Below are positions 3,230-62,300 of a stretch of 64,000 nucleotides of DNA, in pieces (the stretch's first letter is position 1; every line of letters starts with the position of its first letter). This stretch comes from Hyaloraphidium curvatum SAG 235-1. Taxonomy: Eukaryota > Fungi > Monoblepharomycota. Below the pieces are notes generated by a model. The model worked only from the letters and a program-made list of their open reading frames with translations, had not been told where the DNA came from and ran no database searches. The stretch spans positions 62,001 to 126,000 of the forward strand of contig JAIVFI010000016.1 of assembly GCA_025558095.1 (NCBI GenBank). The letters run 5' to 3'. The translations under genes and the position numbers were made by a program.

Positions 3230-3434
3230 GGCCAGTCACATGTCGCGGGAGGCCGCCGGGGGCGTGGCAGGTTGGGCGTGCGGGGCGAGTTCCGCGTCAA
3301 CGGTCCGCGTAGCTTTCTTAAAGATCACCCCAGAAACCACATCCCATTTTGAACAACACCTCGGATCTAGCGGTGAACAGTTTCGTGCAGGTTGGGCAGG
3401 TGGAACATTTGCCTTTGAGCTCACGGTCCCGCAG

Positions 3435-38400: not shown

Positions 38401-39387
38401 CTCGTACATGTAGTCCCCCGACATGACGTAGCCGCCAAACGCAAGGTAGGCGGTGAGAGTGCGGTGCAGGTCGGTTTCCGGTGCCGCCGGGTCCTCGTAG
38501 GCCCGTTGGAAAGACTCGCTGGCCCGGAAGGCGAGCGTGCTCCAGGTGGTGGTCCGGTAGCGGTGCTTCAGCGGCTCCGGCGGCGGCGCCCCCGCGCCCC
38601 CGCCCGGCGGCGGATCAGGCCCGGGACCCCCGGGTGGACCACCGTCGCCTGGGTCGCCCGGATCACCGCCGTTGCCGTGCCCGCCAGCCGCGGCGTTGCC
38701 GCCCGGCGCGCCGTCGCCGCCTGGGGGATCACCGCCGTCCGGGGCGGCACGCGCCGCCGCCGCCGCCGCCGCCAGCGCCGCCCGTTGCGCCTGGACGTCC
38801 TGCGGGGCGTCGGCCGCAACCCGGGCGGCCGCAAGGGCCGCCATCGGCGCGGGCGCGGGTGGCGAAGCACGGGGAGATGCCGACGATGCCGCCGGTGACG
38901 CCGGTCCCTCCGCGCGTCCCGTGGCAGCCGCCCGCTCGGCACGCACGCGGTCGAGGAACTCGACGAGATCGGGTGGAAGCGAAGCTAAAGAGACGCCGAG
39001 TGGCGGGTTAGCTGCGTCCGGGTTGCACGAGGTGTGCTGTCCAGAAACACCGGCACCAGAGGCGTTTGCGGCGTAGGGACGCCGGCAACCCCCGCACCGC
39101 GCGAGCCCCATGGCGCGCAACGCATCGGCAGACAGGCGCTGCATCGCCAACCAGTGCTCCGGGCTCCGTGTGACCCGAAGATGACCGTCCCGTTTGTTTT
39201 TGTTTGGAGTTGGCTGGAAGCGGCAACCATCAACCGGGCACGCATGGAGGCCGGGTTCAGCAGGCGCCTCCGCCATCGGCACATCGCCGTCGATGCAAGA
39301 TTGGTGATGAAGAGATAGAGCTCCGATGTTGGCGAAAGCTGCCGCGCAGCGGTGGCAGCTGTAAGGCAGGAGCGGCGTGCGGCTCAT
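35476..39387 (-). CDS. Retrotransposon ORF3: N-terminal zinc fingers, reverse transcriptase, CCHC knuckle, RLE nuclease (1303 aa)
   Basis: Zinc fingers CHRC..HHQSC and CPVDGC..H..H. RT motifs PLLKPEGGLRPIG, KVDSRNAFN, QGDPLS, YLDD (37393-37404), GAPVG. C-terminal CRRGC..HAFSGC, GHDDI, RLGDVLI..LEIKT (PD-(D/E)xK). Confidence 0.95.
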   Translation of the reverse strand: MSRTPLLPYSCHRCAAAFANIGALSLHHQSCIDGDVPMAEAPAEPGLHACPVDGCRFQPTPNKNKRDGHLRVTRSPEHWLAMQRLSADALRAMGLARCGGCRRPYAANASGAGVSGQHTSCNPDAANPPLGVSLASLPPDLVEFLDRVRAERAAATGRAEGPASPAASSASPRASPPAPAPMAALAAARVAADAPQDVQAQRAALAAAAAAARAAPDGGDPPGGDGAPGGNAAAGGHGNGGDPGDPGDGGPPGGPGPDPPPGGGAGAPPPEPLKHRYRTTTWSTLAFRASESFQRAYEDPAAPETDLHRTLTAYLAFGGYVMSGDYMYEQNYFAARQVNRGARRDGLRPLNYQLFKAIVLAALKGAPGAASAALSGEAVPAGFTPTLQAELEELYPGPREGEPLCRLSLPPNAPAPCPAYTDAAFLEDIWARLRRKKDGVGAGMSGFSMAKLFIVHNCENDATRRKLRPLAAMVHGVCTGRLDTPMLRPLLTDQILVPLLKPEGGLRPIGIMEGITRLAGSYLAVRHKALLRKLQQQEDLGHGVDGGAEATAHAVNAWLAAFPDHVVMKVDSRNAFNTLRRLFAREVVRQVPQLIPYYNLVYSRPSHAYFRDRRSAELLFRITMYEGNIQGDPLSSAIFSCAMSRMLRPIRSGHPDCLILGYLDDLTVVGPLDSVMAVLGEVRDGLASLGMTHRPDKSYLLSLSTNPAVLERVRAAGAAHNIRVAGFPPHEADPEVHATASAPGSPDFARSCGLKVVGAPVGTPAYVESFLAAKIDSIAALLDEIERAALGYAMPADIPSLQGLYSLLRLCVTQLFSFWLRILPPSVTQPFARRLDNALFTTFLRLLGDRAEDLDPLSVEGRTVREQVFLGLHYSGMGLLSSEKVASAAYLSSLNLTAGPLDAMLGLRTSARGVGVEHVRELVPVIEALRPAFERVEDDTAAAYAEAARAGQPVGAAPARRTLPADASFFAQPVWHGLQSDLTRLEDQRRLAALIALQPTTSAGLERRKRLVQAQDGLSAFLTASPALLANHIRNNFFRLLVRFRLCLPLLHEADYPGLSLPCRRGCKRSAMSLTGEHAFSGCYGRDLFSPGHDDICAAIRAALRSIPLLRVHPMPPNLLAHGYETVTPPTPADAGRLGDVLITHRETRKRWLLEIKTLTSMAHLHTGLVFSVPGHAVERRVEAARKDYSRFVFNANFYPLIVLAFDSYSAVSATFSRFSSEMGRIQYPGIVGRDGQPVDLDGLYSRFVRRFRERIAVAWALGVAAQLQHWLQLCTEAAAVNAPAPAPVAFGLNVDEELILGA

Positions 39388-40235
39388 GGCGAATACGGTG
39401 GCGGCGGTGATGCCGGTGTCCCGCCGCCAGGATCAGCTACCGCGGACGGTGCTTTGTCCGACGAGATATCCCAATCGTCGAGCGCATGTGTCCGCATCCA
39501 AACCTCCTGTGACTCGGTCAGGTCGCCCCCCGCCCTGTGCCAGGCCGCAAGCGCCGACCACGCGTCACCGATAGCATCACGGCCGCCGTCATCGAGGAGC
39601 TCGGAACCTGGCCATTCGAGGTGCGCCGGCGAACCGGGCTCCGTGTGAGCATACCAAGGAGGCAAGGTGCGCGTCGGAGTGGATACTTCCGAGGAGCTCT
39701 GCCCCCCCCCGGCCGTTGGTGCCGGCGGCGTGCCGGGGGTTGTGCGGGGCGGCGCAGGCGGCAGCTGCAAGCTCGGCACGGCGGTTGCAGCTGGGGTTTC
39801 CCACGGAGGATGGCCTGGGTGCGCCGGGAGCATGGAAGCGGCCGAAGCCGGGGCATCAGCGATCAAGATCGGCGATGACGAGGAGGGAGATACTTCCGAG
39901 CGTGCCGCCCCTTTCCCCCCCGCTGGTGCCGGCAAGCGGGAGGAGCCGCGGGGCGGCGTGGGCAGAGTGTGACCCTCGGCCAAGCTAGGCACGGCATTTG
40001 GCCGAGGGGCCCCGGGGGACGCGGGGTCAATGTCGGAAGTCTCCCCTGCTGCCGCGAACGGCCTCGGAACTCGGTGAGACGTTGTAGATAGTGGTAGTTG
40101 GCGTACCGGTGAAGACTGCAAAACAGCAAAAGATGGAGGGGCTGACCGCGCCCGGGAGGTATCCGGACGAGCTCGGCGCCGAGAAGAGCAGCCCACTACT
40201 CGGCGTTGCCACTTGCTTGGTGGTGTTTTAGGCAT
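39384..40235 (-). CDS. Retrotransposon ORF2, Pro/Ser/Ala-rich, unknown function (283 aa)
   Basis: Its ATG overlaps the ORF1 stop (ATGCCTAA) and its stop overlaps the ORF3 start (ATGA). Trp-rich C-terminal patch WSALAAWHR..VWMRTHALDDWD. Confidence 0.5.
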   Translation of the reverse strand: MPKTPPSKWQRRVVGCSSRRRARPDTSRARSAPPSFAVLQSSPVRQLPLSTTSHRVPRPFAAAGETSDIDPASPGAPRPNAVPSLAEGHTLPTPPRGSSRLPAPAGGKGAARSEVSPSSSSPILIADAPASAASMLPAHPGHPPWETPAATAVPSLQLPPAPPRTTPGTPPAPTAGGGQSSSEVSTPTRTLPPWYAHTEPGSPAHLEWPGSELLDDGGRDAIGDAWSALAAWHRAGGDLTESQEVWMRTHALDDWDISSDKAPSAVADPGGGTPASPPPPYSP

Positions 40236-42366
40236 TCAAGGACGGTGAGCCAGGAGCCGGCAGCAGGGATCCGGTTGACATGGAGGTGGCCTTGGCCTGG
40301 GGGGAGCCGGGCTTGCGAGCGGCCGCCTTGGCCTTCCGTTCCGCTTTGGCGGATTTGACGTCGATTTGCTGATACGGCTTGGCAACCTTGTCCGGGTTTG
40401 TCCCTGCCACATCCTCCACGGGACGGCCCTTGCCTGCGTGCTTGGGGCCTGGGGCCATCGTAGGATCACCAACCGCGGATGCCCCAGCGGCCTCATCGGC
40501 CGTGTGCATGTCTTCGCTTGGTGCCTCCGAGTTCGAACCATCGCCCTCAGCAGAGGCTTCGGAGGCAGCGTCGTTTCCACCCGAGGCCTCAGAGCCGGTG
40601 GCATCCTCCTCCATCGCAGATTCCGTGCCCTCCATTGCGGGAGCAGCAAGCTCCAGATCCTCCAGCGCGGTATTGGCTGCAACCTGCTGTGCAGCACTGC
40701 TGATGGCGTTCTCAGCGGCCAGCTGGTCGGCACCACCCATGTCCTCGTCCCCATCCTTGTCAGCCGGCTCCAAAATGGGAAGACCATGGAAATCCATCTT
40801 TTCGGCGGCGTCAGACTCCCCCCAATCGACCGAAGCACCGGCACTACCACCACCAAGTGCCGAAAACCGGTTGTGGGACGCCTTGGCCACTGGCTGGGCA
40901 AGAGCTGGGGGCGCAGAGCCTGCGCGCTTGCCGGACGGCCCAGCTGTAAGCCACTCGTCGGCCGCAGGGGCGGTGGGGGAAGCCAGATGCGGAGGAACGA
41001 CCTCTTCCCTCAGGGGGGGCAGCCGTGGGGTCGTGGCGGGCTCCACCGTTGGGGGAGAGAGCCGTACGTTGGCCGGGTTGTGAATGCAGTCCGCCTCGTG
41101 TGCACGGCGTGCTTGCGGGCTGGCAAAGGCGCCGGGATTCATGCGGTTGAGACCGTCTGGGCAGTAAGCACAGTTGGTGCACGTGGCATCGTCACCGACG
41201 TGGCCGCCCGTGCGCTTGCAGTGGCCGCACTGTCCGTTGCTACTGTCATAGCGGACAGCTGGGCGAAGGAGCTTGTGCTGGAGGAGCGTCCCCCACGAGT
41301 CAAGGAAGCAGTACGAGGGTGGGCCAATGCGTGCTGCGCGGTCAAAGAAGGCATCAACCCCGCACTGCGAGACATCGAAAGTGACCCGCCAGAAGGCGTT
41401 GCTGTCGGTGCCCGAGATGGGAGCCGCTTCAATGACTTGGCAAGGGGCCCCATAGTGGTTCTGGAAAGTCGCGTAGAGGCGGGCCCACCAGTCCGGGCAC
41501 TCGTGCACCGAACCAGGGACGATCATGGGCCCGATCTTGAGCTCGGCGTGCGTGTCCTTGAAGACAGGGTGGATGCGCAGCCGACGCGTCGGTCCGTTTG
41601 GGAACTTGACCTCCAGCACCCCCTGCTCCACCAAGGCGTTGATAGCGTCTGCCCCGTCGACAGCACCAACAACACAGAAGAGGTCCAGTCGCGAGTAACG
41701 CGGGTTGTAGCCTCGCGTCTCGGTCGTGAAGACGGTGGTGGGGAAGGTCGCCTTCGCCACGGCTTCGGCGACGACGCGCCGTCGGTCCTTTGGCACACCG
41801 TTGAGGTCGATGAGGCAGTGGGGGACAGGCCCAATGAAGGCCGGCGTGTAGCCCCGACCGTTGGCGTGCGGTTGCACCCGATCGATGAGCTTGGCGTAGT
41901 TGGTGGGCGCCGAGAAAGGCATGGCAGAAGCCAGATGCTCCGCCATCGCGCCGTCCGTGACACGAACAATCGGGCGGTCGGGCGAGGTGCGCGACGTTGC
42001 TGCGGCGAAAGAGCGAGACCCCAGGCGCGTGGCGGGGGCGGTTGCTTTCGGGAGACGATTGTGCTGAGCCGGCTCCTCCCGGGCGCCGCCGTTGGCGGAC
42101 GCGGGGCGGATTTCAGTGGTCGATTCAGCAGCGTCCTCCTTAGAACCTGTCAGCTGAGCCGTAGCACCAGCGGGGGCCGGCGCGGGCTCCTCTGCCGCGC
42201 CAGGGAGGCGAGGAGAGGCAGCGACGCCGGGAGCGTGGGAAGAGTGGACGGGATTCGCAAGCGCCTCCGAGGAGGCCGCGGCGAGCGCAGGGGAGACCTT
42301 GCCATCAGGCAGGACCACGGGAGCGGCCGCATCATTGGGCCCCTGCCCTGTGTCAGGGGGGTCCAT
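40228..42366 (-). CDS. Retrotransposon ORF1, gag-like nucleic-acid-binding protein (712 aa)
   Basis: Disordered ends around a globular core, followed by CGHCKRTGGHVGDDATC knuckle and CAYC..HEADCIHNP finger. Lies inside the TSD-bounded element. Confidence 0.75.
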   Translation of the reverse strand: MDPPDTGQGPNDAAAPVVLPDGKVSPALAAASSEALANPVHSSHAPGVAASPRLPGAAEEPAPAPAGATAQLTGSKEDAAESTTEIRPASANGGAREEPAQHNRLPKATAPATRLGSRSFAAATSRTSPDRPIVRVTDGAMAEHLASAMPFSAPTNYAKLIDRVQPHANGRGYTPAFIGPVPHCLIDLNGVPKDRRRVVAEAVAKATFPTTVFTTETRGYNPRYSRLDLFCVVGAVDGADAINALVEQGVLEVKFPNGPTRRLRIHPVFKDTHAELKIGPMIVPGSVHECPDWWARLYATFQNHYGAPCQVIEAAPISGTDSNAFWRVTFDVSQCGVDAFFDRAARIGPPSYCFLDSWGTLLQHKLLRPAVRYDSSNGQCGHCKRTGGHVGDDATCTNCAYCPDGLNRMNPGAFASPQARRAHEADCIHNPANVRLSPPTVEPATTPRLPPLREEVVPPHLASPTAPAADEWLTAGPSGKRAGSAPPALAQPVAKASHNRFSALGGGSAGASVDWGESDAAEKMDFHGLPILEPADKDGDEDMGGADQLAAENAISSAAQQVAANTALEDLELAAPAMEGTESAMEEDATGSEASGGNDAASEASAEGDGSNSEAPSEDMHTADEAAGASAVGDPTMAPGPKHAGKGRPVEDVAGTNPDKVAKPYQQIDVKSAKAERKAKAAARKPGSPQAKATSMSTGSLLPAPGSPSLNA

Positions 42367-47222: not shown

Positions 47223-48582
47223 ATGAGCGCGCCGGCCGCCGCCGCCGCGCCTTTGTGGTTCGCGTGCGCCGCGTGCCGCCGCCCCGTTCTGCCCGCCGCC
47301 GACCCCGTCGTCTTCCTCGCCGCCAACCGCCCCGCGTGCCCGCACGTCGCGTGCCGCGGCTGCGCGTCCCCGGCGGGCAATAAGCGCCGGCTGGACCAGG
47401 CGTGCCCCGCCCCGGGCTGCGGCGCAGAGTGGGACGCGCTGGGGCAGCTGAGGGACCAGGCGTTCGCGTGGTCGGTGTACCTGGACTCGGTGGTGGACTG
47501 CCCTTCCGGCTGCGGGACGAAAGAGAGGGTGGCACAGCTGGAGGCGCACAGAAGGCGGTGCGCGGGGAAAATGTGTCCGGGGTGCGGGTACAGGAGTGGG
47601 TGGGGGGCCGATCCCGCGGACGCGGACGTGGGTTGCAAGCGGCCCCTCGTCCGCGTAGCCGACTTGCTCACCCCGTCCGCCTTCCAGCGCCACGTGGAAG
47701 CGTGCCCGGACGTCCCCATCGAGTGCGCGAACCCGGGTTGCGGCGCAAAAGTGCCCCGGCGCCTCGCACCGGAGCACCAATCCTCGTGCCCCAAGCGGAT
47801 CGTCACATGCCCCTTTTCGCTGTGCACGCACCAGGTACTTCTGCTCCCTGGATTGTGCTTCGTGCGCCTTCTGATTGCATCTTTCGCACCTTCCCGAACA
47901 GTGCACCGCGGATACCCTCAAGTGCCACACCGACGCCTCGCAGGAGGAGCACCACAACCTCGCCGCCGCCGCCCTCTCGGACCTCCGGCAGGAGCTCACC
48001 GCGCAGCTCCAGGAGGCCGAAGCGCTGCAGCGCGAGCGCATGGCCGCCGCGTGCTCGCAGGTGGTCCGCATCCTCGTCGGCACCGAGGAGACGGGGCTGC
48101 CCCCCGCGCCGCTGCCGACCGAGTGCAAGCCCGCGAGCAAGACCACCGAGAGCGGGACAAAGTACATGTCGGCGCCGTTCGTCTTTTCCGGGGTGCGGTT
48201 CACGCTCATGGCCAAGTTCGACGACGTGCGGGACACGTACGCGGTCTTCATCCGGCTCGGCCCCGGAGGCAGGCACGCCTGGGCAGAGGTCAAGTGGTCC
48301 TTCTGCTTCGTCAACCCCCTCGCGGGCGGCGGCACGCGGCGGGAGCAGCGCGCGCTGCTGGCCAACGACGAGAAGGGGGTGGGGTTCCTGACCATCGCCA
48401 ACAAGGCGCAGGTGCTGGATCCCGCCGAGGGGTTCCTGGAGGAGATAAAGGGGCTCAAGTACCTGGTGTTCAGGGTGTCGATGTACGTCAAGGACGCGGT
48501 GCTGGAGGTGGATGCGCGCGGGGATACGAGGAGGACGAAGACGCTCAAGGACGAGGCGGAGTGGCCCGAGGCGCCGTTTTGA
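47223..48582 (+). CDS. TRAF-like protein: RING-like + TRAF zinc fingers + coiled coil + MATH domain
   Basis: CAAC..CPHVACRGC..CPAPGC RING; zinc fingers CPSGC..H..C, CANPGC..HQSSC, CPFSLC..H; coiled coil; MATH strands SAPFVFSGVRFTL, YAVFIRL, VKWSFCFVN, GVGF, GFL..LVFRVSM. Intron 47835-47901. Confidence 0.82.
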
Positions 48583-48683: not shown

Positions 48684-51600
48684 TCAGTTCCCGAGCCACT
48701 TCCAGATGTATTTCGCCGCCTGCACGAGGGTGCTTTTGCCATGCAGCGCGACAGTCACCTGGCCTCCGGCCCCCGCGCTGAGGAACGGCTGCGTCTTTGC
48801 CGGGATCAAGATCCGGGCGGACACGTATGCCGTTCCGGGGAGGGTCCTTGTCCCGGCATCGGAGATTTCGGCGACCGTTGTGGAAACCCTGCGGATAACG
48901 GCATCAGATCGAGGCGATGGCCGTGCGGCCCGACCCGCTCAAGCTCACGTAAGGTCGGCCGAGAGTCCGGTCCATTTCTCCACGGCCTTGGGCACCCCGA
49001 CGCTGAATACGGGCACCGTCCGTACCTGCGCCGAAGCCCCCTTGGCCGAGTCCACGCCCGCGCAGCTGTTGGCCGCGCACGCCTCCGCGAAGCCGGACCA
49101 GCGCGCGTCGGGGTCCCATGCGGCCCCGACGTTGACCGAGGCGAGGTTGACGTCGAGGAGGGCGGCCTCGCCGGTTCCCACCGAGATGCCGGCGCTCGCG
49201 TGGGCGCCGACGTAGACGCCTTGCACGAGGGAAGGCTTCCCGGACCGGTCCGACGCATCGGGCAGGGGGCCGCACTCCCCTGAAGTCGGAGCTCCAGCGG
49301 CTACGGCAGCTCCCGGAGTCGGCAGCTTGTCGGATCCGTCCGATCCAACCGGTGCTTCCGGTCCTGCATGCGTGGCCTGCGCTTGTGGCTTGCCGTACCC
49401 TCTCGGCTGGGCCTCCGTGCGAGTACTCTTCGCGGGAGCCGGATCCTCGGTCATCCTCCTTGGCTGGGCGTCGTCCGCAGATGGAGCTTCAGATCGGGAG
49501 GCAGGCTCTCGGCCCTCGTCCCCAGCACCATCCCCGCCTGTCTCCGAACTAGATCCTCGAGCCGATCCAGGGGGTGATCCCGTCCCGCCCCCGTCCCCGT
49601 CCCCGGAGGCTGCCATCTTCCACTGGCGGCCCATGTTCGTGCCCGCCGCATAGATGGCCCCCAGCCCGCCGTACAGTGCGCCGTTGATCGCGGCCTGGCC
49701 GATGTCGTCACCCAGCAGCGCGGCGCCTGCCGCCCCCCCCAGGGTGCTCTGGACCGTCTTGTACGCCGTGTCCAGAGCGACACCTCCCACGTCGATGGGA
49801 GCCGAGGGCGGCGGAGTGGGCGACGGCACCACCGCCGACGAGATCTGTGAGACTGCGCCGCCCGCGGCGCCGACCACGAGGCCACCGACCATGGCCTTGC
49901 CGACGCCATCCATCAACGGCCGTCCCTCGACGGCGTTGATCGCCATCGTCGATGCTCCCGCGGAGAGCGAAGCGCTGGCGGCCGCGGAGCCGACGTCCAC
50001 GGCGATCTTGGCCACCCCCTGCACGGATCCCGCCAGCGCCGACACGCCGGCACCCACGGCGGCGCCGATCCCGGCCCCGACGAGCCCCGCGGCAACCCCG
50101 ATCGCGCCGACCTTGAGGAACTCGCCCCATTCCATCCCGCCGTCGCTCAGCGCGGTCCTGACGGTCATCCCGATCCCCGCGGACACCACCGCGCCCCCCA
50201 CGACCGCCGCCAACCCCGCGGTGCACACGCACAGCGCGACGCCGGCGAGGCTGACAGCGACCCCGACGGCGATCTGCACCAGCTTGCGCCACCACGGCCT
50301 GCGGGCTTCCTGCAGCCCCTTGTCGGCGGCGGCGAGGGCGGCGTCCGCGGCCCGGATCCGGCCGGCGATCGCCTCGAGCTCCGCCCCGCCGGCAACGAGC
50401 TGCTCCCGGGCGTGCGCGTAGAGCCCGTCGATCTCCCCGGCCGCCGCGGCCGCGACCTCCCCGTACCTGCGGTCCGACTCGGCCAGCGCCACGGCGAGGT
50501 CCCGCCCCATGCCCTCCCGTGCATCCCGCGCGGCCCCGGCGATCCCCCGAGCGCCGGCATCGAACGCCGCCGAGAGCTCCCCGGTCAGCTCGGCGCCTAC
50601 CTCGCGGATGCGCGCCGCGCAGGCCGCCATCTGGTCGACGCGGGCCGAGGCCATGGCTTCCGCCATGCTCTCGTAGTCGGCCTTGCGGGTCCCGGCGATC
50701 TCGATCCCATGCACGGCCTGCGAGACCCATTCGGCCTGCTGCCGGACGAAGGCCACCAGGGTCTCGGCGGCGTCGTCGCCCGCGGCTTCGAGGCGGAACG
50801 TTTTCTCCCAGATGGCGATCCTCTCGGCCACGAACTCGACCGTCGCATCCCGCGTCCGCAGCACCGCGTCGACGACGATCGATTGCCAGAGCCGCTGCGC
50901 CAGCGACTCGTCGGCCGCGGTCGCCGCCGCCGCGCACCGCCTGCGCACGGCGGAGAAGGCCCGGTTGGCCGCACGGTCGAGCCTGCGGAAGCACGCCGCG
51001 GTATTCTCCGCGTCCAGCAGGACGAACGGCGGCGCGGAAAGCTCCCCGCGCAGGCCTCGGTGCGCCGCGGCGACGGCGAGGGTGTGCGCGGCGAACAGTT
51101 CCGCCGGGGTCGGGATGCGCCCCCCCGCCGCAGCCCCGGCGAGGGCGGCGGGCAGGTCCCACGATCCGAGGCGCTCCTTCAGCTCGGCGGCGTAGACTTG
51201 GCCCGCGGCACGGGCGGCGCCGTGGGCGGCATCGACCGCGGCCGCACGCTGCAGGTCGTACGCGCTCGGGAAGCGGTCGCCTTCGGCATCGGCGAGCCGA
51301 GCCAGGCGGCGGACGTATGGCGCGGGCTCGAAGGGCGCAAAGGCGGGGTCGCAGATGGGGGAGCAGAGTGCGGCGGCCAGCTCGTTGGCGAGCTCAGGGG
51401 CCGATCCCGCATGCGGCCAGACGGCGAAAGAGGCATGGGAGAACAAGGTCTGCCGGTACGGAGTGCGAAACGGCGCGAGTCAGCTGCTCGTGCTTGCTGG
51501 GAGCGCAGCTTTGTAAACGGTGCCGCACCTTCACGCTCTCCTGGTTCCTCCGCAGCACCGTGTCGCCCGCCTGCGCAGCGAGGGCGTCCGCCTGTGCCCG

Positions 51601-52164
51601 ATCGGCCACGCCGGCAAAGTGGACGACGTGCGCCGCGGGCTTGAAGGCCGAGCCGAAGGCGGCAACAAGGGATCCGCTCGCGGCGGCGGGGGCGAGCACC
51701 TCCGAGAGCCACGCCGGGACGGCCGACGGCGCGTTCTCCGCGGCGACGACCACGTGGGCGCCGGCGAGGCAGCCGCGCGGCAGGGCGCCGGGGAACACCG
51801 AGAACACCAGCCAGCGCGGCCGCGGGGCCGGCAGGAGGATGCAGAACGCGTGGGGCTGCGAGGCCGCGCGCAGGTCGGCCGGGGCCGCGAGGCGTGAACC
51901 GTCGCCCAGCAGCGCCGTGGCGAGGCGGCCGGCGACGTCCCACACCTGATGGCACGCGGTGCCTGTGATGGCAATGGGGACCACGGGAACGTTCAGCAGC
52001 GCGATGGCCGGCAGCCCCTCGGCCGTGCGGTCACTCAAAAGTACCGGCACCACGCGGGCACGCCGCTGCCCCGCGACGGCGAACTGCGGCAGCGGCTCCA
52101 GCCCGGCGGGGACCGGCGCCGCGGCGTGGGAGGCATCGGCGGCGATCGGCTCGACGGCGGCCAT
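48684..52164 (-). CDS. Degenerate GBP-like (pseudo)GTPase + helical/coiled-coil region + glycine-zipper hydrophobic region + beta-rich C-terminal domain (~1113 aa)
   Basis: Exons 52164-51529, 51449-48949 and 48888-48684 (GT-AG introns of 79 and 60 nt) splice in-frame. N-terminal AIALLNVPVVPIAITG lacks GKS/T. YVRRL..FPSAYDL..AAGQVYAAEL..PTPAELFAAH resembles the GBP middle domain. PWWRKLVQIAVGVAVSLAGVAL.. begins a long G/A/V zipper. Confidence 0.65.
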
Positions 52165-52187
52165 TCTGTCGTGGATGCCTCGCCTGC

Positions 52188-52240
52188 GCAGCTGATCGCA
52201 GCCGAATGCCCGCTGATCGCAGCCGAATGCGATCAGCTGC
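52188..52240. promoter_or_regulatory. Direct + inverted repeat in the 248-bp bidirectional promoter of the GBP-like pair
   Basis: GCTGATCGCAGCCGAATGC at 52191-52209 and 52212-52230; perfect 13-bp inverted repeat GCAGCTGATCGCA (52188-52200) / TGCGATCAGCTGC (52228-52240). Confidence 0.45.
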
Positions 52241-52412
52241 TTACGAAACTCATGGTGGCGCGGCGCGTTGAGATTGAGCTGATCGGATTGAGATCCTGGG
52301 AGGTCACAGGGCGTCAGCCAGGTTACTTGAGACCCGCGCCGCCCCGCAATCCCGCAACGTCAAACTCCAATTGTCGGCAGCAGAACCGCAAGCAGGCACC
52401 TCCGGCGTAACG

Positions 52413-55400
52413 ATGCGTGAGTGTCCGCCGCCGCACCGCGGCCGCCCCGCGCTGACGCCCTCCGCAGCCTTCGCTCTGTTCCCGCGGCCCGACATTCTCG
52501 TTGTCGCCGTCGTCCAGCGGGGCGGCGACACGTACACAATCGCAGAGTGGCGCCGGCCCGGCGCTCCGGCGTTCGCCGACATCGACGCCGCCGTCGCGAC
52601 CTCGTGGCGCCCCGCTGCGAGCGGCATCTCGCGCATGGTCTTTGGCGGCCACAGCTTCGACTCGCTCCACGCCGCGCTGCCGCCCGCCGAAGATGGCCAG
52701 CCCCAAGTGCACGTCATGGGCATCCGTCGTGAAGGCATCGAGGTCACCATGGCGTACACGGCGACGTTCTGGCGGCTCCACACCGTGCCGCTGCCCGCCG
52801 TGCCCGCGGCCATCCTGCTGATGGCCGAGGAGACCGCCTCGGCTTCGCCCTCGTCTCTGGGGGCCAACTTCTACCAAGTCATGATCGGCAACTTCGTTGG
52901 GGCCTTCAGGGTCGGCAGCGAGGTCCTGGATCTCGCCCGCGCCCTGAACCCGCCGCGGCGGGACGCCCTGCGCGTGCACGCCCGCGCCATCGGCATCGTC
53001 GACGAGGGCCACCCCAGGCCCGACGACCTGCGGCCGATCCTGGTGCCGAACCAAGCCGGCCTCGAGGCCCTGCGCGGCATGGCCGAGGAGAACGCCTCGG
53101 CCGACCGGCCCGTGCACCCGCAGGCCATCATCGGCAGCGTGCGCAGGGGCAAGACCACGCTCAACAACATCATGCTCCGCATTGCTAACGAGGTCAGCAC
53201 CGACAGGCTCGGCACCACCGAGTACGGCTACTACGACTCGGCGTCGGTGCCCTTTTTCTTCCTCGCCTCCAACGCCGGGAGGTCCGTCACCAGGGGCGTC
53301 CAGGCCTACGCGATCGAGACCTTGAACAGGACCGTGCTCCTCCTGGACTTCGAGGGGTTCGACAGCGAGGCTCCTCACGCCGAGATCGGGGAGCCCGGCC
53401 CGTCGTCCGCCGCGGGCCCCTCCAACGCGCCCGCGCCGACCTGGAACCACGCCAACCGCCGCGAGTTCGACACCCGCCTCTACGCCCTCGCCATCGCCAT
53501 CGCACCCACCGTCGTCTTCAACGCCTCGGGGATCGTGTCGGCCTCGCTCACGCTGGACAGCATCGCGGCTCTGCACGGGTCGGCCCTAAACCGGCGCATC
53601 GTGCCGCCCGGGGGCCGCGGCTCGTCGTTCCTGATGATGGTGATGCAGAACCACCCCGACGTCGGGCACGACTCGAGGCAGGACTTTGGCGCCTGGCTGG
53701 ACCGCAACGGCCGCAGGGCCGTCTTCGCCACCACCTTTGGCGACTACGCCGTGGTCAACGTGCCCGGGCCCGAGATCGACCCCGCCCTCGAGGTGTCCCG
53801 CATGCCGGCGGAGCGGCTGCGCAGGAACGGTTACCTGGGCCAGATCATGCGGGCCTGGGAAACCGCAAGGGAGAACGGGCAGCCCGTGCCGGGCGACCTG
53901 GTCAGGCTGATCGAGGTGGGGTCCCGCGTACGTGTTTGTGGGGTACCGCGGCTCATCCAATGTCGCACGCAGGACTCGACGGCGGCCATCAACGCCACCG
54001 CAAACCTCAACTCGTACGGGCAGGACGACTACCAGACCACGCAGCAGATCCGGAGCCACGCCGCGGCGACGGTCGCGGCGCACCGCGCCGCCCTGGAGGC
54101 CAGGCGCCAGGCCGTCGATGCCACGGCCGACGTCTCGCAGCTCGAGACGGCGCAGGAGCTCAGCGCCTTCCTGCACACGGAGCGGCACCGCGCGATCGGG
54201 AACTTCCGCGCCGTCCCCAACCTCTCGGATCAGCACAGGGCCATGCACGGCAACGCCATCGAGCAGGAAGAGCGCCTCATGTGCGAGCAGGTCGACGCCG
54301 CGGCGGACCTCCTCCTGGCCACCTACGCAGCCGCCTCGCGCCGCCACCTGGCCGCCCTCGTCGACGGGATCCGCAACGCCGTGCCGCCCGCAGCCGACTA
54401 CGTGCCCAGCGCCGCGAACCCGACCGCGGATCCCGCCCGGTTCCGCCAGTGGATCGACGAGCGGCTGCGGAGCTTCGACGGCACGGCAAGGGGGCCCAAC
54501 GACGCCGTCACCGCGGCCAGGGAGCGGCTCGCCAGCGACCTCGGGTCGTTCCTGCGGCTGTACCAGCAGCAGGCGGAGGATTTCCGCCGGGCCGAGCGGC
54601 GCGCGCGGGAGCAGGAGGAGCGGACGCGCCAGGAGCAGGAGCGCATGAGGGCCGAGCGCGAGCGCATGGAGGGGGACCTCAGGGCGCAGGCAGAGCTGCG
54701 GCAGCGGCAGATGGAAGAGCAGGCCCGGCAGGCCGCGGAGGAGCTCGGCCGGGAGAGGGAGGCGGCGGCAGCTCAGCTCCGCGAGGTCAATGCCAGGCAC
54801 ATGCAGGACCTTCGGGATACTCAGGCCGAGATGAGGTCCCAGGCGCAGCAGCAGCTCGAGGAAACCGTGGCCCCGCTCAACCGACGCATCCAGGAGCTTT
54901 CCGCCGACGTCGCACGGGAGACTGCGCGGGCCAACGACCTGCAGCGCCAGGCTGACGAGCTCAGGAACAGGGGCGGATGCTTCGCCTCGTCGTGCACGGC
55001 CGAGCTCGAGGATGGCCGCCGCATCGGCGTGGCCGAACTGCGGGTCGGGGACCACGTGCGCGTTGCGCGCGGGGGATTCGAGCCCGTCGTTGGCTTCTAC
55101 GACGCCGATACCGACGCGGAGCCGTGCTTCCTCGAGGTTGCTTTCGGGCTGCAGGACGGCCAGTCGGGCATGATCACGCTCACTCACAACCACATGGTCA
55201 TCGCCAGCAACGGCAGCGGCCCGGCCTTGCCCATGCAGGCGCACAAGCTGATCCCCGGCACCAGCTTCCTCATGCTCGCGGGGAGCATGGACCCTGTTCC
55301 CGTGGTCTCGGTGCGCGCCTCAGATGTCCGCGGAGCCTACTCCCCCGCCACCCCCGGCGGCACCATTGCCGTCTCGGACCGCGGCCCGGCGGTCGTGGCC

Positions 55401-55631
55401 TCCTGCTACGCTAAGCCCTCGACGTTCAGCAAGCTGGCCTGGGACGACGCCGCGGTGGATGCGGCACTGCACGGGGCGTCGTGGTTGCTGCGCATGTGGT
55501 GGGCCGCATCCGGGTTGGCGGGCTGGCCGTTGGCGGGAGGTGCGGCGGGAACTGGCAAGGCTGGGCCGGGAGTTCGGGCCCTCAAGGCCGCAGCAGCGGC
55601 AGCGTTCTCCTGGATTGGGCTGCTGGACTGA
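52413..55631 (+). CDS. GBP/atlastin-family GTPase + coiled coil + Hedgehog-type Hint (Hog) domain
   Basis: G1 IIGSVRRGKTT (53133-53156), G2 RSVTRGV, G3 LLLDFEG, FDTRLYALAIAIAPTVVFN; E/R/Q coiled coil; GG|CFA (Cys at 54978), LRVGDHV, GFYDAD, LTHNHM, GAYSPATPGGTIAV..VASCYA, SRR-like ALHGASWLLRMWW. In-frame introns 52417-52467 and 53916-53972. Confidence 0.88.
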   Translation: MRECPPPHRGRPALTPSAAFALFPRPDILVVAVVQRGGDTYTIAEWRRPGAPAFADIDAAVATSWRPAASGISRMVFGGHSFDSLHAALPPAEDGQPQVHVMGIRREGIEVTMAYTATFWRLHTVPLPAVPAAILLMAEETASASPSSLGANFYQVMIGNFVGAFRVGSEVLDLARALNPPRRDALRVHARAIGIVDEGHPRPDDLRPILVPNQAGLEALRGMAEENASADRPVHPQAIIGSVRRGKTTLNNIMLRIANEVSTDRLGTTEYGYYDSASVPFFFLASNAGRSVTRGVQAYAIETLNRTVLLLDFEGFDSEAPHAEIGEPGPSSAAGPSNAPAPTWNHANRREFDTRLYALAIAIAPTVVFNASGIVSASLTLDSIAALHGSALNRRIVPPGGRGSSFLMMVMQNHPDVGHDSRQDFGAWLDRNGRRAVFATTFGDYAVVNVPGPEIDPALEVSRMPAERLRRNGYLGQIMRAWETARENGQPVPGDLVRLIEVGSRVRVCGVPRLIQCRTQDSTAAINATANLNSYGQDDYQTTQQIRSHAAATVAAHRAALEARRQAVDATADVSQLETAQELSAFLHTERHRAIGNFRAVPNLSDQHRAMHGNAIEQEERLMCEQVDAAADLLLATYAAASRRHLAALVDGIRNAVPPAADYVPSAANPTADPARFRQWIDERLRSFDGTARGPNDAVTAARERLASDLGSFLRLYQQQAEDFRRAERRAREQEERTRQEQERMRAERERMEGDLRAQAELRQRQMEEQARQAAEELGREREAAAAQLREVNARHMQDLRDTQAEMRSQAQQQLEETVAPLNRRIQELSADVARETARANDLQRQADELRNRGGCFASSCTAELEDGRRIGVAELRVGDHVRVARGGFEPVVGFYDADTDAEPCFLEVAFGLQDGQSGMITLTHNHMVIASNGSGPALPMQAHKLIPGTSFLMLAGSMDPVPVVSVRASDVRGAYSPATPGGTIAVSDRGPAVVASCYAKPSTFSKLAWDDAAVDAALHGASWLLRMWWAASGLAGWPLAGGAAGTGKAGPGVRALKAAAAAAFSWIGLLD

Positions 55632-58354: not shown

Positions 58355-58432
58355 CCTTTGAACGTTGTGTGTAATGAGGAGCTAGCAATCCCACCTTTGA
58401 ACGTTGTGTGTAATGAGGAGCTAGCAATCCCA
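58355..58432. repeat. Two perfect 39-bp tandem units forming the retrotransposon 3' terminus
   Basis: CCTTTGAACGTTGTGTGTAATGAGGAGCTAGCAATCCCA at 58355-58393 and 58394-58432; a partial unit lies at 35429-35455. Confidence 0.9.
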
Positions 58433-59332
58433 CCGTACACTTAGAAATCCCCCTACGCCCCAAGAATCAGCTCCTCATCTACATTCAAACCAAAAGCGAC
58501 CGGCGCGGGGGCCGGAGCGTTGACAGCGGCGGCTTCGGTGCACAGCTGAAGCCAGTGTTGGAGTTGGGCCGCGACGCCAAGAGCCCAGGCCACCGCGATC
58601 CGTTCGCGGAAGCGCCGCACAAAACGAGAGTAAAGGCCATCGAGGTCCACGGGCTGCCCATCGCGGCCGACGATCCCGGGATACTGGATGCGCCCCATCT
58701 CCGAGGAGAAGCGCGAGAAAGTGGCAGAGACAGCGCTGTACGAATCAAAAGCAAGCACGATCAGAGGGTAGAAGTTGGCGTTGAAGACGAAACGGGAGTA
58801 GTCCTTCCTGGCGGCCTCGACCCGCCGTTCGACTGCGTGGCCCGGGACCGAGAAGACCAGGCCCGTGTGCAAATGGGCCATAGAGGTGAGGGTCTTGATC
58901 TCGAGCAACCACCGTTTCCGGGTTTCGCGGTGCGTGATGAGAACGTCGCCAAGGCGGCCAGCATCCGCAGGCGTGGGCGGGGTGACAGTCTCGTAGCCAT
59001 GCGCAAGGAGGTTTGGCGGCATGGGGTGCACGCGGAGGAGCGGGATGGAGCGAAGCGCCGCGCGGATGGCCGCGCAAATGTCGTCGTGACCAGGACTGAA
59101 GAGATCCCGGCCATAGCAGCCCGAGAACGCGTGCTCCCCGTCAGCGACATGGCCGATCGCTTGCAGCCCCGCCGGCAGGGCAAGGAAAGACCAGGGTAGT
59201 CGGCCTCGTGCAGGAGCAGGAGGCAAAGCCGGAAGCGTACAAGTAAGCGGAAAAAGTTTTTGCGAATGTGGTTGGCAAGCAGCGCGGGAGAGGCAGTCAG
59301 GAAAGCCGACAGGCCGTCCTGCGCCTGGACGA
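58355..59332 (-). mobile_element. 5'-truncated copy of the CRE-like retrotransposon (RLE region + 3' UTR), frameshifted
   Basis: Near-identical to ~35429-36356, with a few substitutions and a 1-bp deletion (GTGCTCCCCGTC vs GTGCTCCCCCGTC) near 59136. Similarity stops at ..CCTGGACGA (59332). Confidence 0.93.
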
Positions 59333-59376
59333 TCCCGGCGAGCCTTCTCCTTTGTCCGCTCTCGTTTGTTCGGGCG

Positions 59377-62300
59377 ATGTGGCCGCGGCGGTCGACGGAG
59401 GAGGGCCGGCCGAAGCCGCCGCCGGGCGCCGTGCGGGTGCTGCCCCCGGCGAGCACCGCGCCGCCCGCGTCCCCCGCGCTGCCGTACGATCGGCTGAGTC
59501 AGCCCGACCCGCCGCTCGTCGTCGACGGCCGCCCCGCCACGCTGCCGCTGCCGAGCGAGCGGGCGCGGCGGCCGTCGGCGGAGCTGTCGCGCACGTCGCC
59601 GCCGGGCGTCCCCTTGCACCTGCCCGCCTTCCCCCCCGCCGGACCCATGTCGCCCGAAGCCCTATCTGACATTTCCAGCCCGATCAGCAGCGTGGGCAGC
59701 CTGGTCGGCAGCCCGCCGGGGAGCGTCGGCAGCGTCGCAGGGTCCTACGGGGCGCCCGTGCCCGGGGGCGGCAACGGCAACCCGTTCCTGTTCGGCACGC
59801 AGCCCAGCACGCCGATGCCGCAATCCTCCTTCATGCCGCGCACGTCGTCGCTCAGGCCGGCACAGAAGACCGAGCAGCGGGCGCCGGCTGCGGCAGACAG
59901 GAGCTCCTTTGCGGTGCCGTCGCGGCGGGGCACCCAGCCGACCACCCCTCACCAGCAAGCCAACCCGGCTGTCGTCATGTCGCCCAACTCGGCGTCACCC
60001 GTCTCCCCGCTTGCCTCGCCCACGGGCCTGCGGCTGTCGGCGACGCCCCCGCCGGGCGGCCTGACTCCGCACCCGGCGCGCACCGCCTCGCTGCGCGGGC
60101 AGCGCCCCGAGGACCTGGCCGCTCCCATCGGCATTGTCGGCGTGGTCTCCCCCGCGGAAATGGCACGCGGCACGCCGACCCCGCCGCCCGTCGGCGGCGA
60201 GTACTACGACGACCCGCTGCGCCGCTCCGACACTGGGAGGTCGGACGCGGACCGCCGCTCCGTGGGCTCGGTGCTCTCGGGAACTTCGTCGACGCTCGGC
60301 GCCTCGTCGACCCTCGGCGGCGGCAACCACCTGGCGCCCGGCCGCGCGTCGCCGGACATGCTCGCCGAGCCGGCCGTGCCCGTCGCCCGCGCGCGCTCGG
60401 ACCCGGCGTTGCTGGGCTATCCGTCGCCGTCGGGGGGCGACCGCCGCTCCGTCTCTTCGCTCTCCTCCCTGCCCGCTCTGGACGAGGACGACCCCCCGCG
60501 CCCGTCCAACGCCTCGTTCATCGCCGGCCAGGAGGCCATGGCCTTTTCCAACGTCGTCTCGATCGACGCCTGGGCCTCCACGGCCGGCCGCGGCCCCGGC
60601 ATGGGCGAGCGCACCGTCTCCTCTTCCACCATCCCCCCGCGGCAGCAGACCATCCCCAGCCAGCGCCCCTCGATCCCCAGCCGCGACGTCTCGCTCCCCA
60701 AGTTCACCCCCGACGAGCTCCTCGACAAGGGCGTGCACAACCTGGACCCCGCCTTCTCCAAGCGCTTCGCCCCCGACGCCGCGCTCCTCGAATTCGCCCA
60801 GGCGCGCAAGCTGGCCTCGGCCGCCGCCGACATCTTCCGCGAGGCGCGGTGCTACATGGACGAGGGCGTCGCGCTCGCGCACCTCCCCGGCCGCGAAGCG
60901 CAGGCCTACGCGCGGCTCAAGGAGGCGTGGGACATGGCGCGGCGGTGCGTGATGCGGGCGCGCAACAGGACGCTGTGGACCGAGCTGGCCGACGCCATCA
61001 TGGAGGACTGGGAGGACGAGGCGGCGCCGCCCGAGGGGGCCGGCGGGGAGGACGAGGCGGTGACGACGACGCAGGCCAAGGCGCGGGCGCGGAGGCGCAG
61101 GGGCGAGGCGGGGGCGCTGCCCGCCGGGGCCGGGTACAGGCCCGTGAGCAAGGGCGGGCTGATGGCGCCCGACCCGGCCACGGGCCCGCCGATGGTCGCC
61201 TTCCTGCTGGACCTGATGGTGAACCTGGGCAACTGCTGCGCGCGGATGCACGGCCGCCGCGCCGAGGCGCTGGCGTGGCACGAGGGGGTGCTGGAGCTCG
61301 CGGACCGGACCGTCGCGGCGTACCCGGAGCCGGAGCCGGGGAAGGACGGCCGCGCGAGGCCGAGCCAGATCCACAGGCACCTCCTGTACTCGCGCGCCGC
61401 GGCGTGGACGCACATCGGCGCGCTGCTGACCCTCGAGGGGCGGCCGGTGGAGGCCGCGGGGTGCCACCGCCGCGCCTTGGAGCTGTGCGACGCGCTGCAG
61501 CCGCGGATCGAGGCCGCGTGCGCGCGGTACGGGAAGCAGGTCGCCGAGATGCTCGGCGGGCAGACGAGCAACCACCCGCCCCGGACGAGCTCGATCGCCG
61601 CCCCCGCGCGCTCGGCGTCGACCGCCAGCGCATCCTCCGCCTCGACGCTGGTCAACCCGCCCGCGCCGCCGTCGAGGCAGGTGCTCGAGGACCTCCGCAA
61701 CGCCGTTTTCACCTGCGCGCGGCTGCGCGCGGCGGCGCTGAGCCACCTCGCCTCGGCGCACCAGGCGTGCGGGCAGCTCCGCCTTGCGGTGCGGCTGCGG
61801 CGCGCGGCGGTGGGCGAGTTTGCGCGGTGCGGGGACGTGCTCGGGCTCGCGAGGGAGCGGGCCAACGCCGCGGGGTTGCTGGCCGAGTGGGGCCGCGCGC
61901 TGGCGCAGGCGGCGCGGGGGGAGAGCGAGGCGGCGGCGGCGGCGGGGAGGGCCGAGGCGCCCGGGAACGGGGAGGTGGCCGATGCGGCCGAGGCGGTGGT
62001 GCTGGGCGGGGGTGCGGCGCTGCTCCGGGACGCGGGGCTGTACGACCTCAAGCCGAGGGGGGCGGCGGTGTCGCAGATGCCGCCGCTGGAGCAGACCAAG
62101 ATCGTCGAGGGGGTGGGCGTGTGCGGGATGATGGCATCGATCGGTGGGTTCCTCGCGGGGGGAGCGTGCATGCATTCGGACTGACGGGGGCCTTTCAGCC
62201 TCGCTCCTGAGCACCATCTCCCTCCCCCGGCCGGCCCTCAAGTACGCCGACGCCCTCCTCTACAACTCGGCCGCCTCGGTCCGCCGTTCGCAGGCCTCGA

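Follow-up and report, generated by a model that had tools for sequence, protein, structure and literature searches.

Hedgehog has been called singular in its ligation of cholesterol, and the cholesterolysis of SHH needs H374, F377 and R381 in helix 1 of the tail together with the His and the aromatic residue of the HWY motif in helix 2 (PMC7242414). Within the Hog domain of Hedgehog, D46 activates the cholesterol hydroxyl, is dispensable for thiol cleavage and also restrains premature cleavage, loss of D46 speeding the cleavage by dithiothreitol (PMC9163320); C143 is also required (PMC12054796). GTPases carrying a Hog domain and no signal peptide have been published for Glomus mosseae (GmGIN1; PMC2362128) and for the snail Biomphalaria (AIG1-Hint; PMC7053062), and the former paper leaves open what Hog domains, which occur widely in eukaryotes, attach in proteins other than Hedgehog (PMC2362128). 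For attachment to target membranes GBP1 depends on the farnesyl at its C-terminus (bioRxiv 2021.08.26.457804). Tandem dynamin-like pairs have been proposed to work as heterodimers (PMC4159319), and Eleos is an anti-phage system (bioRxiv 2022.12.12.520048). The gene analysed here lies at 52413-55631 (+) in a window of 64,000 nucleotides of Hyaloraphidium curvatum SAG 235-1 (assembly GCA_025558095.1, contig JAIVFI010000016.1), the DNA of which is eukaryotic, intron-containing and of about 68% GC. It joins a GBP-family large GTPase to a Hedgehog-type Hog domain and is accompanied by a divergent partner gene. A Hog on a GTPase lacking a signal peptide is known, and the GBP version is new within the literature searched, where no paper on the GBP-Hog fusion or on the gene pair was found (most subscription journals lay outside the reach of the search). 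The original prediction made from this DNA overstated the novelty of the arrangement, GmGIN1 and the snail protein being GTPase-Hogs already.

The segment 54978-55631 is a Hedgehog-type Hog domain. The Pfam Hint family (PF01079) matched with 69 bits and E 5.3e-19 against a gathering score of 29.7, and the competing Vint and Hint_2 families scored lower (15 and 14 bits). The top sequence matches in the PDB were the Drosophila Hedgehog structures 6td6, 1at0 and 6tyy. In the alignment C1, D46, T69, H72 and C143 were identical to those of Drosophila Hedgehog, and the D46 position was aligned to the His of the D46H mutant structure. The AlphaFold model of the Hint domain (pLDDT mostly 76-87) placed 6tyy and 1at0 on top of the Foldseek matches (TM 0.81 and 0.79, E 2e-8), before inteins and bacterial intein-like domains (BILs). 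The result is in accordance with the original prediction, which had called this a Hedgehog-type Hog; the motifs it quoted (GG|CF, FYD, TxxH, SCYA and a helix resembling the sterol recognition region, SRR) all lie in one forward frame where it had put them. The features of this end of the gene are given below.

54975..54980 (+): predicted scissile Gly|Cys bond (G-1 at 54975, C1 at 54978), aligned to Drosophila G257/C258
54978..55412 (+): Hint domain, with D46 (Asp of FYD) at 55101, T69 and H72 (TxxH) at 55182 and 55191, and C143 (Cys of SCYA) at 55404
55446..55508 (+): SRR-like helix 1, with His 55470 and Arg 55491 kept, the F377 and P379 equivalents changed and a hydrophobic moment of 0.48
55566..55631 (+): SRR-like helix 2 and stop codon, amphipathic, with no HWY motif and no CaaX

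An intein or BIL identity was ruled out, as there is neither a terminal Asn nor a +1 nucleophile and the Hint part ends in SCYA, followed by a helical tail and the stop. Hedgehog proper was also ruled out, the Hedge domain being unmatched in Pfam and a signal-peptide hydrophobic core being absent. The domain shares with Drosophila Hedgehog (1AT0, 6TD6) the Hint fold, the Gly|Cys junction, D46, TxxH, the C143 of SCYA and a helix-loop-helix tail with the helix-1 His and Arg. It differs in lacking HWY and the F377 and P379 equivalents, in belonging to a separate Hog clade and in its host, a cytosolic GTPase instead of a secreted Hedge ligand processed in the endoplasmic reticulum. Two amphipathic helices are predicted in the tail (residues 1012-1032 and 1052-1071); the His and Arg of the first align with the Hedgehog-type rows, and the F377 equivalent is Ser. 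The amphipathic SRR-like helix of the original prediction thus stood as regards these two residues, but the missing HWY of the second helix had gone unremarked. A transmembrane tail was rejected for this copy, in which the 19-residue Kyte-Doolittle hydropathy (KD19) does not exceed 1.4; in some relatives helix 2 reaches transmembrane-like values (KD19 up to 2.65).

The conservation of the catalytic residues was examined across the Hog clade. No change at C1, D46, H72, S142 or the SRR His and Arg occurs in any of the 16 clade members, which are about 30% identical; 13 of them retain G-1 and three, the window protein included, retain C143. P0004, P0005, P0009, P0013, P0152 and P0153, all of them without C143, carry a His-x-Cys-type motif that precedes the scissile bond by 3-5 residues; the three members bearing C143 lack this motif, and neither the window protein nor its orthologue at locus L002 has an upstream Cys. 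In this small sample, which has exceptions, it is possible that the upstream motif swaps for the second nucleophile or is an S-acylation site. On the evidence of these residues, self-cleavage at Gly|Cys with release of the Hog domain is very probable. The invariance of D46 favours transfer to some nucleophile over plain hydrolysis, and there is about an even chance that a membrane lipid, a sterol being the likeliest, becomes ester-linked to the Gly that ends the cleaved GBP.

The host of the Hog domain was assigned through its relatives. The window protein by itself falls under the Pfam GBP (PF02263) cut-off, with E 0.024; relatives pass it and are linked to the window protein by hhalign at 97.7% and also at E 3.6e-11, so that the GBP label of the original prediction was right though far from obvious. 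The GBP-Hog family profile matched human GBP2, GBP5 and GBP1 at E 4e-36 to 1e-30 across the GTPase, middle and GED regions and spans GBP1 18-584. An atlastin/Sey1 identity was ruled out, as atlastin gave E 2e-8 only and the profile reached about residue 375 there as against about 584 in GBP1/2. The family has 11 members including the window protein. The relatives are Allomyces arbusculus, A. macrogynus AMAG_14797, Quaeritorhiza haematococci, a Chytriomyces hyalinus fragment and unassigned JGI, ENA and Logan contigs, the named ones being early-diverging fungi. The full-length relatives pass both the GBP and the Hint cut-offs of Pfam. No match to the family profile was found in viral, metagenome and prokaryotic genome collections. 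The features of the GBP part are as follows, GC3 being the GC content at third codon positions.

52413..53915 (+): exon 1, with N-terminal domain, helical linker and GBP-type large GTPase domain; GC3 0.85-0.97 throughout
52482..52832 (+): N-terminal alpha/beta domain, unnamed, about residues 24-140; tblastn to L002 E 8e-22
53133..53156 (+): G1/P-loop with the Arg equivalent to hGBP1 R48 (arginine finger)
53283..53297 (+): G2/switch I, in which Ser and Thr correspond to S73 and T75 of hGBP1
53340..53357 (+): G3 DxEG motif with the D97, E99 and G100 equivalents
53646..53651 (+): G4 position with Gln-Asn instead of the Arg-Asp of GBPs; likewise in L002
53916..53972 (+): intron of 57 nt, in-frame, GT-AG, phase 0, marked by a GC3 dip and an intron in the orthologue
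53973..54974 (+): first part of exon 2, with GBP middle helical domain and long coiled coil (GED/alpha12-13-like); hhalign 94.5% to the family, predicted helix 696-848

The gene runs from the ATG at 52413 to the stop at 55629-55631, and its predicted mature protein has 1053 aa, of which the Gly|Cys cut would yield 836 and 217 aa. Third-position GC of the frame is 0.82-0.97 and dips only at 53853-53972 and in the final 30 codons. The 57-nt intron was confirmed by the L002 (SRR23967301) orthologue, which has an intron, a frame-changing GT-AG one of 53 nt, at the identical codon boundary; the 19 residues encoded by 53916-53972 are missing from the intron-less relatives. From residue 16 onward exon 1 is 36% identical to its counterpart in the L002 orthologue, and it matches the family profile at hhalign 97.7% and E 1.3e-12. 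The N-terminal alpha/beta domain (about 120 aa) is common to L002, Allomyces AMAG_14797 and, by eye, other family members, the N-terminus of P0152 matching it visibly; no match to it was found in Pfam or PHROG. The exons were searched apart, and the full-length fold prediction used the unspliced frame with the 19 intron-encoded residues. Exact look-up of the unspliced open reading frame (ORF) found no database record, the word-indexed homologue search with the GTPase-coiled coil region was blank, and phmmer of the GTPase region against the PDB gave coiled-coil noise only. The original prediction was right in reading a GBP-Hog, but it had missed the intron, the head-to-head partner gene and the change from RD to QN at G4.

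The position of the Hog domain was compared with the lipid-bearing end of animal GBPs. In the family profile GBP1 residue ~584 lies at position ~651 and the Hog Cys at position 673, which suggests that the Hog replaces the CaaX end of GBP1 to within about 20 residues; a place "exactly" at the farnesyl site, as first proposed, holds in this approximate sense and not to the residue. No recognisable CaaX follows the Hog in any of the 11 family members and none lies ahead of the cut; the predicted cleaved GBP product would end in Gly. The first 35 residues of the window protein have no hydrophobic core, in agreement with the earlier claim of a cytosolic host without a signal peptide. With animal GBP1/2/5 the family shares full-length similarity over the large GTPase, middle and GED regions (best E 4e-36), the R48, K51, S73, T75, D97 and E99 equivalents and the end of the last helix as the site of a lipid, should there be one. 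It differs by the Hog in place of CaaX and polybasic patch, an N-terminal extension of ~230 aa, a longer coiled coil and, in the window protein and its orthologue, QN for RD at G4.

The relation to other GTPase-Hog proteins was analysed by a maximum-likelihood tree of 81 Hog domains, a quick search only, whose rows had been selected for their likeness to the query, so that clade content is biased. All 11 GBP-Hogs fell in one 17-row clade (SH-aLRT 98), which also includes three AIG1-like GTPase-Hogs (P0017 and P0006/P0155 by Pfam, P0008 by motif only). This clade carries YAKP and an insertion of ~11 residues ahead of helix 1. Because other AIG1-Hogs were placed elsewhere in the tree, Hog domains appear to have been joined to immune-type GTPases more than once, and such repeated joining would fit a recurring need for a C-terminal membrane anchor. 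AIG1/GIMAP-Hog fusions were also found in Obelidium, Acaulospora and Lingula proteins. Like GmGIN1 and the other AIG1(GIMAP)-Hog fusions, GBP-Hog combines a GTPase, a coiled coil and a C-terminal Hog with no signal peptide; unlike them, its GTPase is of the GBP/dynamin superfamily, and it has an extra N-terminal domain and a conserved partner gene. Sterol anchoring is said to have been suggested already for GmGIN1. As a separate observation, the same Hog clade caps proteins that are not GTPases, namely a 1708-aa carboxypeptidase-regulatory-like repeat protein and two Cys-rich proteins (P0012/P0151 of Diplonema, P0021, P0029).

The partner gene occupies 48945-52164 (-), head-to-head with GBP-Hog. 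Its features are as follows.

52165..52412 (no strand): intergenic gap of 248 bp between the divergent start codons, a probable shared promoter; the head-to-head layout is also found in L002 and L004
51529..52164 (-): partner exon 1, probable GBP-derived pseudo-GTPase domain; 37% to the L002 partner, E 4e-21; GC3 0.92
51450..51528 (-): probable partner intron, 79 nt, GT-AG; the L002 partner is a continuous ORF across this point
48945..51449 (-): partner exon 2, with GBP-middle-like helices, coiled coil, hydrophobic Gly/Ala region and variable C-terminal tail; 28% over 526 aa to L002
50028..50288 (-): two hydrophobic segments of membrane-inserting type in the partner (KD19 2.4 and 2.0)

Short direct and palindromic repeats at 52183-52239 in the gap are possibly shared regulatory sites. 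The partner is adjacent to GBP-Hog in five loci; apart from the head-to-head pairs, the two genes of A. arbusculus lie tail-to-tail, and in the A. macrogynus assembly (L006) the partner lies upstream and is split into several parts. Exon 2 has matches in L003, L004 and L006. Exon 1 lacks the P-loop Lys, DxxG and RD. The partner has no Pfam match, the word-index homologue search found only the partner itself, and its profiles gave no match in the viral, metagenome and prokaryotic genome collections. A model of the L002 partner, built without GBP rows (mean pLDDT 44), had LeoA, hGBP1/2/5, HflX and EF-Tu as its top PDB matches (E 3e-3 to 5e-2). Pfam GBP_C matched the L003 partner copy weakly (E 0.008 over 205 residues). 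A colinear profile alignment of 443 columns between the partner and the GBP-Hog family scored 20.4 against at most 12.9 in 11 reversed or block-shuffled controls. Comparison of the partner with GBP by single-sequence hhalign and HMMER was not significant, and the viral fold search of the partner model gave scattered small-GTPase matches only. On three weak but independent signs the partner is probably a GBP-derived pseudo-GTPase, which is a lead and not a result.

The hydrophobic region and tail of the partner were also compared with known proteins. The region matched the type III secretion system (T3SS) translocator AopB at E 2.9e-4, and the L002 partner matched the pore-former MakA at E 4e-4, both profile matches being weak and composition-biased. 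With the T3SS translocators AopB/YopB/IpaB and ClyA-type MakA the partner shares a coiled coil followed by Gly/Ala-rich hydrophobic hairpins; unlike them it has a GBP-like N-terminus and no secretion signal, and the matches lie far under the cut-offs. The C-terminal tails differ entirely between the copies. In the long tail of the L004 partner (2993-3799, -), Arg, aromatic-Thr and Glu motifs are spaced like those of an ADP-ribosyltransferase by eye; the tail had no match in the Pfam, NCBIfam, PHROG, PDB or plasmid libraries. The pair resembles the Eleos/LeoA-LeoBC, IniA/IniC and DynA pairs in having adjacent dynamin-superfamily genes, one with membrane-inserting segments. It is unlike them in being eukaryotic, intron-containing and of GBP type, in having one member with predicted autoprocessing, and in a partner with a variable tail and without any GTP-binding motif. 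The GKS and GMS proteins of the IRG family are comparable paired GTPases. Membership of Eleos was ruled out, as the PADLOC LeoA/LeoB matches cover the coiled coil of exon 2 alone and neither N-terminal domain, leaving an analogy only.

These results suggest the following course of events. A GBP-family large GTPase would be made as a cytosolic precursor of 1053 aa, and C1, aided by TxxH, would attack the carbonyl of the preceding Gly to form a thioester. The thioester would probably be passed to C143, and the Hog of 217 aa would finally be released from the GBP of 836 aa. The two amphipathic helices of the tail would dock on an internal membrane, where D46 may activate an alcohol among the membrane lipids, most probably the sterol of this organism, for esterification to the C-terminal Gly, which lies at the coiled-coil tip. 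This is the site where GBP1 presents its farnesyl upon nucleotide-driven opening, and the anchor would be presented likewise. The lipidated, active GBP would then label or cover a membrane and, by contacts of the GTPase domain or the stalk, recruit the partner or set it free, both acting as a cell-autonomous defence or cell-death module. By analogy with the tandem dynamin-like pairs, there is at best an even chance that GBP and partner act together in a defence module directed at membranes. The best explanation as a whole, a lipid-anchored GBP with a membrane-inserting partner and probably a defence function, is evenly balanced between being right and wrong. Its fullest form is rather doubtful: a two-gene eukaryotic defence or cell-death system, mostly of early-diverging fungi, in which a sterol-self-lipidating GBP controls a membrane-inserting pseudo-GTPase with a swappable C-terminal effector.

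Several observations weigh against this explanation. Neither the window protein nor any of the 16 clade rows has the HWY motif or the F377 equivalent, C143 is missing from 13 of the 16, and in this copy the first His of the family motif HxxxHxxxxPxR is Asp and its Pro is Leu. There is no polybasic patch ahead of the cut in the window protein. The replacement of CaaX by a sterol, as originally proposed, keeps the missing CaaX and the invariant D46 on its side, but is weakened by the loss of HWY, F377 and, in most relatives, C143. At G4, QN occurs only in the window protein and its L002 orthologue, all other members having RD, and D184N cripples hGBP1 with loss of function (PMC2714978; bioRxiv 2021.08.26.457804); the GTPase may accordingly be a weak one or take a different nucleotide. 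Because all the other catalytic residues are kept between the two proteins at 36% identity, a dead GTPase is less likely than a changed preference for the base or looser binding, and the change counts against a canonical GTP-specific GBP, not against the family descent. The partner was not seen beside the GBP-Hogs of L005, L007 and L010, where the flank was sufficient (L008, L009 and L011 have little upstream flank), and its GBP ancestry rests on weak signals.

The divergence of the SRR from the sterol-binding residues of Hedgehog would also suit a covalent ligase, in which the thioester is taken up not by a sterol but by a protein or another nucleophile, such as Ser, Thr, Cys or Lys on the partner, a target or the surface of an invader. 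Protein-ligating Hint domains exist, for example Tetrahymena BUBL, whose structure was among the fold matches of the GBP-Hog model, and the conserved partner gene is a candidate acceptor. A cyclic or acylated C-terminus could also arise in relatives from the Cys that precedes the cut by 4-5 residues, and the six GBP-Hogs having an HxC-type Cys before the cut all lack C143. The window protein and its orthologue have no such Cys, the C-terminal Asn or +1 nucleophile of splicing inteins and BILs is missing, and the two amphipathic helices with the helix-1 His and Arg point to a membrane; the ligase and its variant together are judged unlikely. An equally unlikely course is that the Hog is a membrane tether or inhibitory cap and that hydrolysis or thiolysis frees an unmodified GBP. 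The absent HWY, the loss of C143 in most relatives and the transmembrane-like helix 2 of some (KD19 up to 2.65) would agree with such a release, and D46 could be retained as a brake on premature cleavage, as in Hedgehog; against it stand the tail of this copy, which is not transmembrane-like (no KD19 above 1.4), and the invariance of the SRR His and Arg along with D46 in 16 of 16.

A Hog left uncleaved in vivo, serving merely as a folded membrane-binding end domain, would be consistent with the partly eroded SRR motif of this copy; it is very improbable, every catalytic residue being kept between orthologues only 31-36% identical. That the GTPase and the coiled coil-Hog are separate products joined by an artefact of the gene model is hardly credible. 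The deposited model of the locus has only the last 462 residues, beginning at residue 611 and missing the GTPase, and L011 has an in-frame stop between its GBP and Hog parts, but the window gene is one open frame of high GC3 with a conserved intron, and seven relatives are single GBP+Hint proteins, several of them intron-less. The lipid-anchored GBP thus remains the preferred explanation. GBP-Hog offers a clean test setting, with a cytosolic host, a full catalytic set and animal relatives needing a C-terminal lipid at the same place, and the natural variants with and without C143 and HWY would probe the current mechanism of Hedgehog. A sterol adduct, if true, would be a convergent replacement of prenylation and a covalent sterol on a cytosolic protein; any other adduct would amount to Hint chemistry of a new kind, perhaps usable as a tool for ligation. 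Little has been described of such GTPase systems in fungi, for which the conserved partner suggests an immune module built on a GBP.

Further observations were made at the loci of the relatives. In L011 a single TAG at 2080-2082 separates an in-frame GBP ORF from a coiled coil-Hog ORF and may be a read-through, a variant code, an error or a real split. In Allomyces arbusculus (L003, 435-5367) the GBP-Hog is closely preceded by three ORFs, of an A32-type packaging ATPase (E 2e-8), of DUF5901 and of a capsid-like protein. They probably form an endogenous Polinton-like element, which may carry GBP-Hog as cargo or have inserted beside it. The GBP-Hog of L008 has a primase-polymerase neighbour. In Allomyces macrogynus (L006; 3764-5881 and 12421-14576), where the partner is in pieces, a near-identical partial second GBP gene lies downstream across an assembly gap.

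The rest of the window was surveyed as well. A gene at 47223-48582 (+), tail-to-tail with the partner, shows RING-like and TRAF-zinc-finger-like Cys/His patterns, a coiled coil and a MATH-like end by eye, its pieces having no Pfam match at E 0.01; a TRAF-like gene beside the GBP-Hog and partner pair would suit an immune cluster. A non-LTR retrotransposon occupies 35476-42366 (-). Its ORF at 35476-39387 encodes a reverse transcriptase (Pfam RVT_1, E 7e-10) with an end of restriction-like endonuclease type by eye, and the upstream ORF at 40228-42366 is a probable ORF1. A second copy of its 3' part at 58405-59300 is 99.4% identical over at least 896 bp, and the element was therefore recently active. 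An ORF of 974 aa at 59260-62184 (+) has a disordered N-terminal half and TPR repeats (TPR_7, E 6e-6), and the gene at 30473-32228 (-) resembles an FG-repeat nucleoporin (Nsp1/Nup62-like by eye).

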